Assembly: GCF_032062105.1 (NCBI RefSeq)
Contig: NW_026925447.1
Coordinates: 1-64,000 of the forward strand
Source of the DNA: Saccostrea cucullata
Taxonomy: Eukaryota
Direction of reading: 5' to 3'
Length of the DNA stretch: 64,000 nt
Both the position numbers and the translations under genes were made by a program. The notes beneath the pieces were generated by a model. It worked only from the letters and a program-made list of their open reading frames with translations. It was not told the origin of the DNA and did no database searches. How positions within the stretch are numbered: position 1 is the first letter of the stretch; each line of letters begins with the position of its first letter. This document shows, piece after piece, positions 23,169 to 30,556 of this stretch.

Positions 23169-23602
23169 TATTTTATGTTCCTTAGTTCTCCTGCCAAACG
23201 ACTGAGCTTGTTTTTTGATAAACAGGCAAAAACAAATAACATCATGCTGAAGTGAAATATGTCATTTATTAAAGTAAATGACGGAAAAGTAAAACACATT
23301 TAACAAATTGGGGGTCAGAAAAAGGAGGACTCAAATATAGAGTATTACACATCTTAGTCAAAATATTACACAATCTGACCCCAAGCACCATAATGACATT
23401 GTAACATGATGTACATAGGCAAAAGGGGGGTCAACCAGACTACAATAATAATTCCAACCCTGTAATCTTTCACAAGGTACAATATACATGCATTTTAAGT
23501 TGACCCCCTTATAAACATCATAAGTTTGGAAGACATATACAAAATGCTCTAAACTGCTGCCTGTCATCAAAAAAGGTGGGAAAACAAAATAACAAACAGC
23601 CA
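23169..23602 (+). repeat. Direct repeat P, copy 1 (434 bp)
   Basis: No difference seen from 24181-24614 (offset 1012). Confidence 0.97.
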
Positions 23603-23975
23603 ATAACAATACAATCGCGCAGGCATTAAATTGAACACAACTATGTTTCTCTCACCGCCGAGGAAAAAACATATATAAAAAGCCTCACTGCTTTATGCTG
23701 AAAAATCATATGGAAACCTGCAGACATAAGCAAAATTGCGAGGTACACAAAATGGATGTCGGACTCATTCTCAGTAACCTAATACATGGATTTGCAAATT
23801 ATTACGATGTACAAAAAGTTTACTTGTTCAGTAAGAACCTGCGGTAGAAATAAGTACTATAAATCTCTTTTAAACCCATTCAAACACTATCAAAAAGGAT
23901 TGGTAAAACATAACAACAAAAATATCAACCTGAAAGAAATTACAAGCATTGGGGGCAGAAGGGGTGGATGGTGGG

Positions 23976-24186
23976 TTCGAAAAATTCAGCAGTTCAATAA
24001 ACCATGCTTTCTCGTTTGGTAAACGGATCAATAATGAACACGTGGTAAAGGGTAAAATTAGTTCAAAAAAGGAACCGAATAGCTACTTAGTATAAAACTA
24101 AGTCCAATACAGACACTGTTTTATAATAACATAATACAACAAGAACATGTCACATAAATGCAATTATTTGCAATAATTACTATTTT
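23976..24186 (+). repeat. Direct repeat Q, copy 1 (211 bp)
   Basis: Matches 30346-30556 (offset 6370) with one mismatch seen (C24161/T30531). Confidence 0.97.
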
Positions 24187-24614
24187 ATGTTCCTTAGTTC
24201 TCCTGCCAAACGACTGAGCTTGTTTTTTGATAAACAGGCAAAAACAAATAACATCATGCTGAAGTGAAATATGTCATTTATTAAAGTAAATGACGGAAAA
24301 GTAAAACACATTTAACAAATTGGGGGTCAGAAAAAGGAGGACTCAAATATAGAGTATTACACATCTTAGTCAAAATATTACACAATCTGACCCCAAGCAC
24401 CATAATGACATTGTAACATGATGTACATAGGCAAAAGGGGGGTCAACCAGACTACAATAATAATTCCAACCCTGTAATCTTTCACAAGGTACAATATACA
24501 TGCATTTTAAGTTGACCCCCTTATAAACATCATAAGTTTGGAAGACATATACAAAATGCTCTAAACTGCTGCCTGTCATCAAAAAAGGTGGGAAAACAAA
24601 ATAACAAACAGCCA
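24181..24614 (+). repeat. Direct repeat P, copy 2
   Basis: Matches 23169-23602. Confidence 0.97.
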
Positions 24615-24919
24615 CAATCCAATCAGAGATTGGATCCACCCACCCAAAGGCGTCTTGGCAGGAGACGCAAATTTCCTCAACAGGATGATTAATACAGAAG
24701 CATTTAAAATTCTTCTTTTTTTTTAAATTGACATATACTCAGTTCAAAAGACAATACAATAGTTATTATGAACAAGAAAAAGTAACATCCAATAAGACTG
24801 AGTGAAAACATTACAAAGAGCAAAACATCAAATAATTTTAAAAGGTGTACAAAACACCTGTCTGTAGTAAATATTAACCAGACAGCAAAATGGGAATTTA
24901 TAATCATGGACAATGACCT

Positions 24920-26642: not shown

Positions 26643-28279
26643 TGAAACATTCCATGTACAAGATGATCTAATTATTCAAATACATTTGGTCCTGTGTTTA
26701 GCCAATATCTATTGAATGATATAACATACTAAACATGTATATGGTCCTGTGTTTAGTCAAACATTTCATGTACAAAACATCTACTTTCTAAGCACGTATG
26801 GTCCCGTGTTTAGAGAAATATTTTTATATACAACATGATGCAACAACTTAACACATATGGTCCTGTGTTAACTGAGATATTCCATATACCAAGTGATGCA
26901 ACTTTCTTAACATGTATGGCCCCATGTAAAGTGAAACAACATTGCATACAACAATCGAATGCATAAGCTTAAAAGCATCATCAATAGAAATTGCAGGGTT
27001 AATAAGCATGTATTTTTTTTTCCCTGTATGACAGTAAATCCTCATTAGGATACCATTATGCTACAGTAATTTGCATTTGTCAAACGTAGGGTCCCGCTCG
27101 ACGGCTACTGAGCTCTGCAGAGATTGATTATAGAGATGATCCATGAACTGTGTTCACCCTTTGTTTCATATTTTGTAAAACAACTATTATAGAAGATATG
27201 ATTTCATAAAATGTGTTTCTTTTGAAGGACCTGTGATTCTACCATTTTCTTTCTTTTTCCATCTAAAAATATATATATTCATGATCCTATGATCACCCTA
27301 AGTCTTCTTTGATTTCTAGAAAGTTTTATTTTAGGTAGTTTAGTACTATCTGACATAAAACTGGTAAATATCCCTCTGATATGACTTTTAGTTTACTAGA
27401 TCTTGATCAAAGCTTTGAAATATTCAAATGAATCTCTTTATCCTGAATGAGGTTAGTTTTTAGATTAAAGTTGTTGTTTTGTTTTGTTTTGTTTTTTTTT
27501 TTCTTTTTTATGCATCGGTCAATTGAGTTAAAGTGATTGGGATTTAAAATTTTGGGCCCTGCTCCATATCTCAAACCCCTGTTTCAGAAGAATTGACTAA
27601 AGTTTGCTTCATGTACTGATAAAAGACATGAAGTGTATAAAAATCATTATTTCAAAATTAGGATATATATATTTTTTATACAGAAACTATTGAATTAAGT
27701 GAAAAACCATTTTATCCTGATATTATCTTACTCAATGGACTTGTTGACAGAGCAGTCCCCAGAAACATGAACCAATACATCACTCAAACTTAAAGTGGCT
27801 GTTGCCACTATACTTTGCTATGTTGAGGCAATGTCCTTGGTAATGGGCACTTGTTTGTCCACTGTTGTGTTGTCTGTGCATGCATATCTGATTTCTGACT
27901 GTTGTTTCCACATGGCCCATATAGTTTCTGCAGGTGTTACCCAGTGTGGATAGTGTCTGTTTCTAATTTGGTGGGATAGGTAACTCTGGAAAAATAAAAG
28001 TGTAAACTACTATCCAGTATATGATATTCTTTTTTTATCAAGTGCTCTGATCTAAATCAATATTTTAAGCCATGTCCTATACAACTGAACAAGCAAGATA
28101 AATTCTTAGAGAATGACATAATTATTTTACTTTGGGTATTGCACAGCTGCAATAAATCAACAGGGAATAACAGGTTATGTAAATTCCAACATATGTCTAC
28201 ATATGTGCAGCATAAATTATTCTTATTATAACATTATATTACCAAAAAAGCACTTCAAAATTTGCATGTCATAATATAC

Positions 28280-29240
28280 TACCATGCAGGTCTTGCACAA
28301 ATCAACAAACACAAGTGCATTATTGTGCATATGGTCCTGCACAATCCAATAAAATACATGTGTATATGGTCCTACACAAATCAACAAACACAAGTGCATT
28401 ACTCTGCATATGGTCCTGCACAATCCAATGAAATACATGTGCATATGGACCTACACAAGTCAACAAACACAAGTGCATCTGATCCTGCACATTTTCCCTG
28501 CAAAGTTCAACAAATTCATGTGTATATGGTCCAGGACCTACACAAGTACTAGTCATCAAAAATGTGTGCATAGGGACCTGCATGAGTCAACAACTTGCAT
28601 GTGCATATATTGTCCTGCACAAGTGACTAAGTCAACAAAATACAAATGCATATGGTCCTGCACAAGTGACTAAGTCAACAAAATACATGTGCATATGGTT
28701 GCGTACAAGTCAACAAAACAAAATATATGTCAATTTGGCATAATTATGTATGGTTCTGCATGAGTCGACAAAATACATGTGAATATAATTCTGCCCAGAT
28801 CAACAAAATGCATGTGCATATAATCTTTCATGAGTCAAAAGGTAATACATGTGCACATGGTCTTGTCCATGTCAACAAAATACATATGCATATTGTTCTG
28901 CACATGTCCACAAAATATGCGTATATGTTCCTACAAGAGTCAACCAAATGTGTCAGTGAAATGAATGTGAATATGGTCCTTCACAATCATAAAATACAAC
29001 ATAACATGTAAATCAGTGGTGGGTTTGCATGGTAAACATAAGTAGTGTATGTGGACCTCACTCTACACTAATTCTCAGTAAAAGGTCACCTGAAACTATG
29101 GTGTGCACCCTTAGCAACAATACTATATCAGCATTAAATCATGTAAATCATTCTACCTACAATATATATGTATATACAAGCTGTGCCTATGACCTGCACA
29201 GTTTATGTGATAAATGTGTATGTGGTCCCACGTACACTTT
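28280..29240. repeat. Degenerate ~35-45-bp array with hairpin core TGTGCA-TATGGTCC-TGCACA
   Basis: Repeated CATGTGCATATGGTCCTGCACAAGTCAACAAAATA-like units. Confidence 0.9.
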
Positions 29241-30345
29241 ATCTTGATTCAACAATTGAAAATTTGAATCATACACGATTTGTGAACCCATATAATGACA
29301 ATATTTTACCAACATCATATAGGCAACTTACTCCAAACAATATTTTTGGCTCCATGAACAACTTGAGTAAACTTGAGTAAGATCATTCGTTGTTCAAACT
29401 CTTAAAAGGAAAAGCAGAATTTGTTACCAAGTATAATACCTCTATTGGTAAAAATATTGCAAAATTATATAAGGAACCAAAAAACTTTAGCCTTTAATTA
29501 TGAGCTAATTAACTTAATTTTAATGGATAACACATGACTTCATCAGAAGTACTATACTATACTGGCCTGTTTTATACTGGGAATGCAGGAGTGTAAAGTG
29601 AATACTACATCAGCATCAATGGAGATCTCATAGCTTGTAAAAAGGTAACACTCGTCACTGCTGAGCTGTTTATATTCACTCATCAATATCTGGTTTGTGT
29701 AGATGATTCTGACATTCAAGTCCTTGAAGAAGTGAAAGGTTTCCACGTAAATAGGCAAAAGTTCCTAAAGGAATGAAGTTACCGGTGTGATTGATAAAAT
29801 CTCCAGGCCTGATCACGGTGTTAGGATTAACGATGTAGGTGAATCACTGACGGCCAGTTGCAAAAACCTCCCGGGAAAAAGTCTATACACTGTCAGGTCT
29901 ATAATGTAATTGTATATTATTGTTTGCAGCAGAGACCTACAGCGAAGGGTCTATGTTTACAGCTGACATAGTTCATGTAAGAGTTTTCGGGATCTCGAGC
30001 CCGACATTATTTACTACATATTTTACACCACTGTAGATACACTGACACTGTTTATCGATCGTTTACCAAATTTACTTCAGTTGATCATATTATTCCCCAG
30101 ACGACTCTTATTAATAGAATATCCATGTAAGAATCGCATGTAAAGTATTTTGGTCGTCCTGAATTGCGACTTCCTCAGCATGCTTAATGCCCGCCTGTAA
30201 ATTTTACAAGGCTGATTTCGCAACAAAAACTCACTTTACAGACGTTTTTCTACCAATAACAAGCAGATCAGATCGTCCGAAATCTTCAAAATGGCATCAC
30301 AACAAAAGTTGTAGGATTTTCTTTCATTGGTAAATATGGTATAAA

Positions 30346-30556
30346 TTCGAAAAATTCAGCAGTTCAATAAACCATGCTTTCTCGTTTGGTAAACGGATCA
30401 ATAATGAACACGTGGTAAAGGGTAAAATTAGTTCAAAAAAGGAACCGAATAGCTACTTAGTATAAAACTAAGTCCAATACAGACACTGTTTTATAATAAC
30501 ATAATACAACAAGAACATGTCACATAAATGTAATTATTTGCAATAATTACTATTTT
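30346..30556 (+). repeat. Direct repeat Q, copy 2
   Basis: Matches 23976-24186. Confidence 0.97.

Follow-up and report, generated by a model that had tools for sequence, protein, structure and literature searches.

What kind of mobile DNA lacks genes of its own, carries its terminal repeats in a split and interleaved order, and holds an internal copy of its own joined ends? An element of 7.4 kb with these properties lies in the genome of the oyster Saccostrea cucullata, within the first 64 kb of contig C7584 (hereafter, the window, that is, the whole stretch of DNA analyzed) of an assembly of 1.17 Gb in 23,869 contigs. This element is very probably a young insertion of a non-autonomous, Ngaro-like (DIRS-order) tyrosine-recombinase (YR) retrotransposon. 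Its enzymes must come from coding relatives elsewhere in the same genome, among which we infer the actual helper to be. The first-pass annotation of the locus had proposed a recently inserted, non-autonomous PAT/Ngaro member; homology and architecture support that proposal, except that the family is, judging by its domains, Ngaro-like rather than PAT.

On the plus strand, repeat finding and direct reading of the sequence give the order P1-x-Q1-P2-5.7-kb body-Q2. The two P copies are 100% identical over 431 bp, the two Q copies differ by 1 mismatch in 208 bp, and the internal Q1|P2 join, ACTAT|TTTATG, is the same as the product of joining the outer ends, which confirms the repeat geometry initially described. 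The minus strand is taken as the sense strand because a gag remnant in the body matches on that strand; in sense orientation, the order becomes A1 (Q)-decayed interior-B1 (P)-A2 (Q)-spacer x-B2 (P). The longest open reading frame (ORF) in the element encodes 122 amino acids (aa) and lies inside a tandem array, so the earlier statement that there are no recognizable ORFs is borne out. No match to a reverse transcriptase (RT), a YR or a hydrolase was detected in the element with tblastn, and it has no coding capacity of its own. The parts of the element are given below in sense order, followed by the body as a whole and the adjoining T-run; L069 denotes C12788:1200-10950, the region of a coding relative, and L069rc the coordinates used for the layout of that relative.

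30346-30553, minus strand: A1 (outer Q, Q2), the 5' split direct repeat in sense orientation; its plus-strand end is ...AATAATTACTAT
29466-29751, minus strand: remnant, at the nucleotide level, of an SGNH-like ORF1 region (sensitive blastn, 67-71% to L069rc 6173-6529, collinear)
28289-28917, minus strand: hairpin arrays with 35-79-bp units (Tandem Repeats Finder (TRF) and repeat families)
27511-27931, minus strand: decayed gag-like ORF2 remnant (tblastn with ORF2 of the C12788 element; nucleotide identity 62.5%)
27160-27472, minus strand: gag/pol junction remnant, located upstream of the RT domain (blastn, 61.6% over 320 nt to L069rc 4088-4396, collinear)
25795-26927, minus strand: hairpin array of ~20 units of 55/59 bp (TRF, D1 and D2 families, hairpin census)
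24924-25457, minus strand: tandem array of 70/105-bp units (TRF)
24615-25017, minus strand: region adjoining B1 that resembles a 3' untranslated region (UTR) (alignment to the coding relative); it includes a 44-nt block at 24629-24672
24184-24614, minus strand: B1 (inner P, P2), 100% identical to P1
23976-24183, minus strand: A2 (inner Q, Q1), which together with B1 forms the internal copy of the end-to-end junction
23603-23975, minus strand: spacer x, 373 bp, between A2 and B2; 91-98% conserved in other copies
23172-23602, minus strand: B2 (outer P, P1), the 3' terminal repeat in sense orientation; its plus-strand start is TTTATGTTCC
24615-30345: body, 5.7 kb between P2 and Q2
30554-30558, no strand: T-run directly to the right of the element; with the T at 23171 on the other side, it defines a T-rich insertion site

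A tRNA or RNA polymerase III origin was rejected given that no tRNA genes and no Rfam families at gathering score were found in the element. The possibility that P is a TG...CA long terminal repeat (LTR) with a primer-binding site (PBS) and a polypurine tract (PPT) was rejected as well: at the outer end, TTTA invariably precedes the TG, and P has no neighboring tract that resembles a PBS or a PPT.

The element belongs to a family that is dispersed across the genome. We scored the best 40 matches per search, counted duplicates of one insertion once, and studied the full-length copies other than that in the window at their ends only. The assembly contains 302 P starts and 93 window-type Q ends, compared to 0 hits with reversed-pattern controls, so that the recurrence of P and Q far exceeds chance. 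As anticipated in the first-pass annotation, the same geometry recurs with different flanks: at least 10 other loci carry P-x-Q-P-body-Q between unrelated flanks (C10065, C14865 (twice), C1850, C15861, C13605, C20053, C9872, C13460, C10004 and C753). Also present are solo P-x-Q units of ~1.0 kb (C12866, C11616, C22709, C4738, C5954, C7979 and C11469) and solo P-body-Q units of ~5.8-6.6 kb (C354, C16326 and C11899), which are most simply explained as products of recombination between direct repeats (A1xA2 or B1xB2), similar to solo LTRs. The copies resemble each other at 97-99.5%. In a whole-genome run from another sample, the depth over the element is ~15-60 times that of the flanks, and reads with heterogeneous tails break exactly at the P start (23172) and just past the Q end. 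The P-to-x, x-to-Q and Q-to-P junctions are each bridged by contigs of independent runs. In runs filed as RNA, contigs cover every part of the element and none cover the flanks.

Several loci show duplications of individual insertions. One insertion with the same flanks is found on two contigs (C14865:18453-25259, denoted C14865a, and C13837:7572-14367), and a 4.8-kb direct duplication at C13460:355359-361888 holds two element copies. Haplotigs or recent segmental duplicates seem to be present in the assembly and to inflate the copy counts. C8244:6200-12400 contains a 1216-bp unit in at least four tandem copies. Each copy takes in the initial 123 bp of P, and the last 40 nt before its P start are identical to the left flank of the C13605 insertion. 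We rejected this array as a variant of the family, and interpret it as a local tandem duplication of flank plus P start or as an assembly artefact across an insertion boundary. A locus on C13604 with other sequence after P contains no ORFs and was uninformative.

The two copies of each repeat within an element are inherited together. This partner-pair analysis used repeats aligned from 11 independent composites for P and from 8 for Q. All 7 P variants with exactly two carriers occur in both copies of one element (binomial test with a chance of 1/21 per variant; P = 5.6e-10), and so do 7 of the 8 such variants in Q (binomial P = 4.4e-8), the sole exception being a one-base deletion in an A-run. 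The variants with more than two carriers, four in number, consist without exception of complete partner pairs. Distances between elements are the same whether repeats in the same position or across positions are compared (5.6 vs 5.6 for P; 5.18 vs 5.21 for Q), and among the aligned composites there are no variants specific to P1 or P2, or to Q1 or Q2. The occurrence of private variants in both partner copies thus indicates that the repeats are regenerated from one template rather than maintained as separate lineages; that is, both copies of each repeat appear to be rebuilt in every cycle, in an LTR-like manner. The shared variants span nearly all of P (columns 66-304) and Q (columns 28-190), a spread that would fit an RNA holding essentially one A and one B.

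Contigs of the RNA runs and the read tails of the other sample contain another continuation after the first 57 bases of the body, and this continuation led to a coding element on C12788. The C12788 element is 7.24 kb long and has the structure P'-Q'-P'-interior-Q', with four frames antisense to that direction (L069rc: P' 94-530, Q' 556-812, P' 809-1257, antisense ORFs 1904-7036, Q' 7078-7335). The two Q' copies are 98.8% identical, and the two P' copies 95.1%. Read in the sense direction, the order is A1-ORF1 (277 aa)-short hairpin-repeat region-ORF2 (385 aa)-ORF3 (576 aa)-ORF4 (327 aa)-B1A2B2. ORF3 matches RVT_1 (37.7 bits; cut-off 29.6), followed in the expected order by RVT_thumb and RT_RNaseH signals below their cut-offs; the RT/RNase H has 1645 homologues, the best of which, at 95%, is in Saccostrea cucullata. 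ORF4 matches Phage_integrase (29.1 bits; cut-off 27.1), and all of the tyrosine recombinase residues R168, H285-x-x-R288, W311 and Y319 are present; this recombinase is apparently intact. Sequence comparison identified no relatives of this recombinase with solved structures. The first-pass annotation had called for an RT/RNase H/YR partner that shares P and Q, and the C12788 element, with its homologous P and Q and its A1-ORFs-B1A2B2 layout, is such a partner.

ORF1 (L069:2716-3546, plus strand) has no Pfam match; its language-model features match SGNH/GDSL clusters (0.97), with the ten best all from one family, which we treat as a lead only. The same applies to ORF2, the features of which match clusters named C3H1-type zinc-finger proteins of molluscs. 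No methyltransferase match to Pfam was found in the four frames of the C12788 element, and the DIRS methyltransferase-like domain may not be represented among the Pfam models. With its 576 aa, the RT/RNase H frame stops soon after RNase H, leaving no room for a methyltransferase. The assignment of the family as Ngaro-like (apparently without a methyltransferase) rather than PAT rests on this domain content.

Further intact YR frames of the C12788 family are present on C5365 and C22234, and families with 66% and 62% protein identity to the C12788 YR include many intact copies. The latter families were rejected as the source of a closer helper, given that their B repeats are more distant (~70%). 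Two of these more remote families, located on C22355 and C22813, share the B-A-B geometry at the 3' end and the TTATGTTCC start. Copies of a diverged subfamily on C1023, C2440 and C3786 have P'Q'P' followed by unrelated or interrupted sequence and contain no ORFs, and cross-listing the contigs that carry P starts with the best 97 Phage_integrase matches yielded no overlap. In a six-frame search, the genome gave 1184 candidate stretches for Phage_integrase and, for the C12788 recombinase, 2018, many with intact frames (324-400 aa). Tyrosine-recombinase elements seem to be far more common in this oyster than the 'low copy number' given for bivalves (PMC10294476).

The window element is homologous to the C12788 element in its repeats and its interior. 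P and P' are ~78% identical and agree in their first 23 nt; between Q and Q', identity is ~70% overall and reaches 89.6% in the last 48 nt. At ~62%, the body aligns collinearly with the C12788 interior and preserves the order of its segments (3' UTR, gag/pol junction, gag, hairpin repeats, ORF1 region). The gag remnant (27511-27931) is recognizable at the protein level (38% over 92 aa, E 1.3e-8, minus strand; tblastn with ORF2 of the C12788 element); no protein-level match was found for the ORF1 remnant at 29466-29751. The 2.4 kb of the C12788 element that encode most of the RT, the RNase H and the recombinase have no counterpart in the window element. It had been suggested that the RT/YR genes were replaced by hairpin arrays. 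Arrays do stand in for the RT, RNase H and YR; the body as a whole, however, is a decayed collinear derivative that retains a gag remnant.

Just inside P2, the 44-nt block at 24629-24672 is 100% identical in the C12788 element, within surroundings at ~62%. Contigs and reads from other family members align to this block only, with loose ends at 24629 and 24671/24672. The block holds TTGGCAGGAGA, an 11-nt inverted copy of positions 15-25 of P (23186-23196 / 24198-24208), and could possibly be a priming or end-pairing signal. Only the last 43 nt of spacer x match the ~25-nt A2-B2 spacer of the C12788 element (81%), and x is thus mostly an insertion at the A2-B2 spacer. No significant match was found between x and the body, and the possibility that x is a deletion derivative of the body was rejected for lack of similarity.

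All copies start with TTTATGTTCC and end with AATAATTACTAT. TTT is present at the left end in each of the 12 elements for which both ends are available, and a T directly follows the right end in all of these 12 elements and at all 18 distinct right ends; in about two thirds, the right end is followed by TT. There is no flank duplication in 8 of the 12 elements, and in the other four, the overlaps are T-runs of 1, 1, 2 and 5 bases. Thus, insertion is at a T-run and involves no fixed-length target duplication. The first-pass annotation had pointed to TATTTT at the left end, the internal join and the right end. This holds for the window and is not general: because the base that precedes the TTTATG start varies between copies, and only TTT on the left and T(T) on the right are constant, the shared core is a short T-run rather than TATTTT. 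DIRS-order elements are known to be flanked by a short species-specific trinucleotide, which is TTT in Xenopus (PMC7192593, PMC9210276).

Both flanks of the window insertion are single-copy, and no haplotig without the element was found in this assembly. The proposed check for an empty site turned out favorably: a paralogue on C9572 (72-76%) is collinear across the insertion point, from 33 bp to its left to 750 bp to its right, and reads ATGATTTTTTTTTTCAAT, but this is a diverged paralogue, not an allele. An empty allele of the window insertion would read ...AATAATTTTA-T(n)-ATTTCCTATA..., without duplication. As to the surroundings, the right flank (30557-31300) has a 76% paralogue over ~750 bp (C9572:6900-8500) and weaker copies on C932, on C20463 and in the window itself (51444-51682), and the element sits at the edge of another, older repeat or duplicated gene fragment. 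Just to the right of the element, window positions 31311-31617 comprise two adjacent units of ~172 bp that are 84-87% identical.

The body carries three groups of arrays (70/105-bp, 55/59-bp and 35-79-bp units, detected with TRF). The 70/105-bp array is an amplified segment of ~95 bp from the 3' UTR, each unit being 71-79% identical to L069rc ~1584-1680, and together with the 55/59-bp array (15.8 copies at 92% plus 3.2 copies in TRF), it occupies the place of the RT, RNase H and YR genes. The 35-79-bp array has its homologue in the repeats that separate ORF1 from ORF2 in the coding relative. The units of the latter two arrays form hairpins with a common loop. In the 55/59-bp units, the stem AAACACG/CGTGTTT encloses the loop TATGGTCC, and in the 35-79-bp units, the same loop on the plus strand lies between inverted arms such as GTGCA/TGCAC. 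The loop sequence occurs 26 times in the window, of which 25 occurrences, all on the plus strand, are inside the element, and 22 of these 25 are flanked by at least 5 complementary bases. The surrounding stems are of at least 7 kinds (ACACG/CGTGT, GTGCA/TGCAC, GTGTA/TACAC, ACATG/CATGT and others). The same search found no hairpin with this loop in the other 56.6 kb of the window. The hairpin units are located at 25795-26927 and 28289-28989 in the window and at L069:3998-4201 in the coding relative, which has 4 such hairpins between its first two ORFs. A distinct hairpin of A1, AATTATT-TGC-AATAATT, has a 7-bp AT stem.

In an alignment of 11 distinct hairpin units, the five inner pairs are always paired, and both sides of the stem are changed in 3 or 4 units for each pair; these 11 units were selected for having stems, and only the 22 of 25 figure is unbiased. 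Because the loop is conserved and the stems compensate, the pattern suggests a putative selected structure. A tentative and, on balance, rather unlikely proposal is that these hairpins (TATGGTCC on the plus strand, GGACCATA in the sense RNA) are a candidate cis-acting recognition signal of the Ngaro lineage, for example, for packaging or protein binding, and that multiplication to ~25 copies could let a gene-less element out-compete its helper for the helper's machinery.

Given this architecture, replication of the window element can be pictured along the lines of the model for DIRS-order elements (Cappello et al.; Poulter & Goodwin), in the outline summarized in PMC7192593. A subgenomic RNA without most of A1 and B2 would be reverse-transcribed by the RT of a helper, and the internal B1A2 junction would supply the template on which the ends are restored and joined. 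A2 would be the source of the new A1, and B1 that of the new B2. The helper's recombinase would then insert the closed DNA by crossing over in a short T-run.

Other explanations account for parts of these observations. The alternative offered in the first-pass annotation was that a P-x-Q element (1.0 kb) and a P-body-Q element (6.4 kb) with the same ends came to lie head to tail, either in one event, after which the composite was propagated as a unit of DNA, or several times over at a recombination site. Indeed, both units also occur alone at several loci, but such solo forms are expected from direct-repeat recombination (PMC8547959). After a single accretion, P1 and P2 would be separate lineages, whereas no position-specific variant exists and the private variants are shared (7/7 and 7/8); a one-off accretion is ruled out because the repeats are apparently regenerated from one template. 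Under repeated accretion from different elements, the partners would not share private variants. Moreover, the coding relatives have the B1A2B2 layout built in. Accretion fails on the element-private variants found in both copies of each repeat, and we consider it improbable. The origin of the family as a dead relic, with copies produced by segmental duplication or as haplotig and assembly duplicates, and with repeats kept alike by local gene conversion, would be in line with the copies that do duplicate one insertion (the C14865a/C13837 flanks, the C13460 pair 4.8 kb apart and the 1216-bp duplication on C8244). This scenario is a shade less probable still: at least 10 copies have unrelated flanks and boundaries exactly at TTTATG and ACTAT, the reads of the other sample show heterogeneous flanks at the same two boundaries, the copies are 97-99.5% alike, and there is a paralogous site without the element on C9572.

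A non-autonomous rolling-circle element of the Helitron/Helentron type with satellite-like arrays, in which read-through of termination would generate the head-to-tail order, shares several traits with the window element: tandem arrays are found in Helentron derivatives of oysters (PMC7492417), target duplication is lacking, the right end is invariably followed by a T, and a small hairpin lies 5 nt before that end. Helitrons, however, have TC...CTRR ends and insert between A and T (or T and T); here, the ends are TTTATG...ACTAT, and the base that precedes the left end varies. Unit-wise copying of DNA would not homogenize P1 with P2 or Q1 with Q2. The homologous coding elements encode RT/RNase H and YR, not Rep/helicase, no Rep/helicase element with these ends was seen, and a gag remnant is kept in the body. 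A rolling-circle origin is thus highly improbable. Least of all can we credit a misassembly, with the P-x-Q-P order arising from collapsed repeats. In its favor are the identity of the repeats and the fragmentation of the assembly into 23,869 contigs; against it, the same order is found on at least 10 contigs, all three junctions are bridged by contigs from independent runs, and the coding relatives show the same order.

For the Ngaro-like retrotransposon origin itself, several points weigh on the other side. Frequent gene conversion between direct repeats could mimic regeneration from a single template and is the sole other route to the observed pattern. The coding relative is only ~78% (P), ~70% (Q) and ~62% (interior) identical to the window element, none of the best 40 matches per search of this assembly was a coding element carrying window-type P and Q, and another element may be the real helper. 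The RNA runs are kept as contigs, in which no start, end or strand of an RNA is readable, and the coverage of the element by these contigs is explicable by carry-over of DNA from a repeat with 30 to 60 copies. The circular intermediate is a conjecture: the junction of a circle would be indistinguishable by sequence from the internal junction. DIRS-1's extrachromosomal cDNA is mostly linear and single-stranded (PMC7192593). Finally, the 373-bp A2-B2 spacer is outside the canonical layout.

Few mobile elements are as poorly understood as tyrosine-recombinase retrotransposons, whose replication model has been put to the test in just a single species. The oyster family offers young copies, matching coding and gene-less members, and solo forms, and the apparent rebuilding of nearly whole repeats from a single template would constrain where the RNA must start and end. 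It also represents a second route, besides Helentrons, for spreading short tandem arrays in oyster genomes, and explains several hundred repeat copies that ORF-based annotation would leave unclassified.

The window element is a well-documented case of mobile DNA of an already known kind rather than of a new one, albeit unusual in its large size, its 373-bp A2-B2 spacer and its multiplied hairpin units. As outlined in the accounts of Ngaro (Goodwin & Poulter 2004), these elements have the layout A1-[ORFs]-B1A2B2 and are described without a methyltransferase (PMC8547959, PMC9210276, PMC4157794). Like Ngaro, the oyster elements have split direct repeats in the order A1-[interior]-B1A2B2, the internal ones lying downstream of the recombinase; coding relatives with RT/RNase H and a tyrosine recombinase and without a methyltransferase match; an extra putative SGNH-type hydrolase ORF in the coding relative; no fixed target duplication; and solo AB units scattered through the genome. 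Isolated AB repeats have been described as solo-LTR-like and are so read for Ngaro in Cafeteria (PMC8547959). Unlike Ngaro, the window copy is gene-less, with arrays of hairpin units in place of the RT, RNase H and YR genes, and its A2-B2 spacer is 373 bp long, where the coding relative has ~25 nt. The SGNH/GDSL-like ORF of the oyster coding element comes first after A1, before gag, whereas in amphibian Ngaro it follows the recombinase (PMC9210276).

Another gene-less derivative of a YR retrotransposon is the short SIRE element of Trypanosoma cruzi, which accompanies VIPER and is non-autonomous. SIRE corresponds to A2, a short unique spacer and B2 of VIPER (PMC6681497) and is, in this respect, comparable to the solo P-x-Q units; in contrast to SIRE, which is an AB unit of ~0.43 kb only, the window element has 7.4 kb, the complete split-repeat architecture and a decayed interior. 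The PAT-like elements of the DIRS group share with the oyster family the A1-B1-A2-B2 split direct repeats and the tyrosine recombinase, but carry a methyltransferase after RNase H (PMC4157794), for which the 576-aa frame of the oyster coding relative shows no match. The Helentron-derived elements of Crassostrea gigas are gene-less and disperse short tandem arrays (PMC7492417), as does the window element, but they are rolling-circle elements with Rep/helicase partners, whereas the window element has RT/YR partners, split repeats and an LTR-like co-inheritance of its repeat copies.

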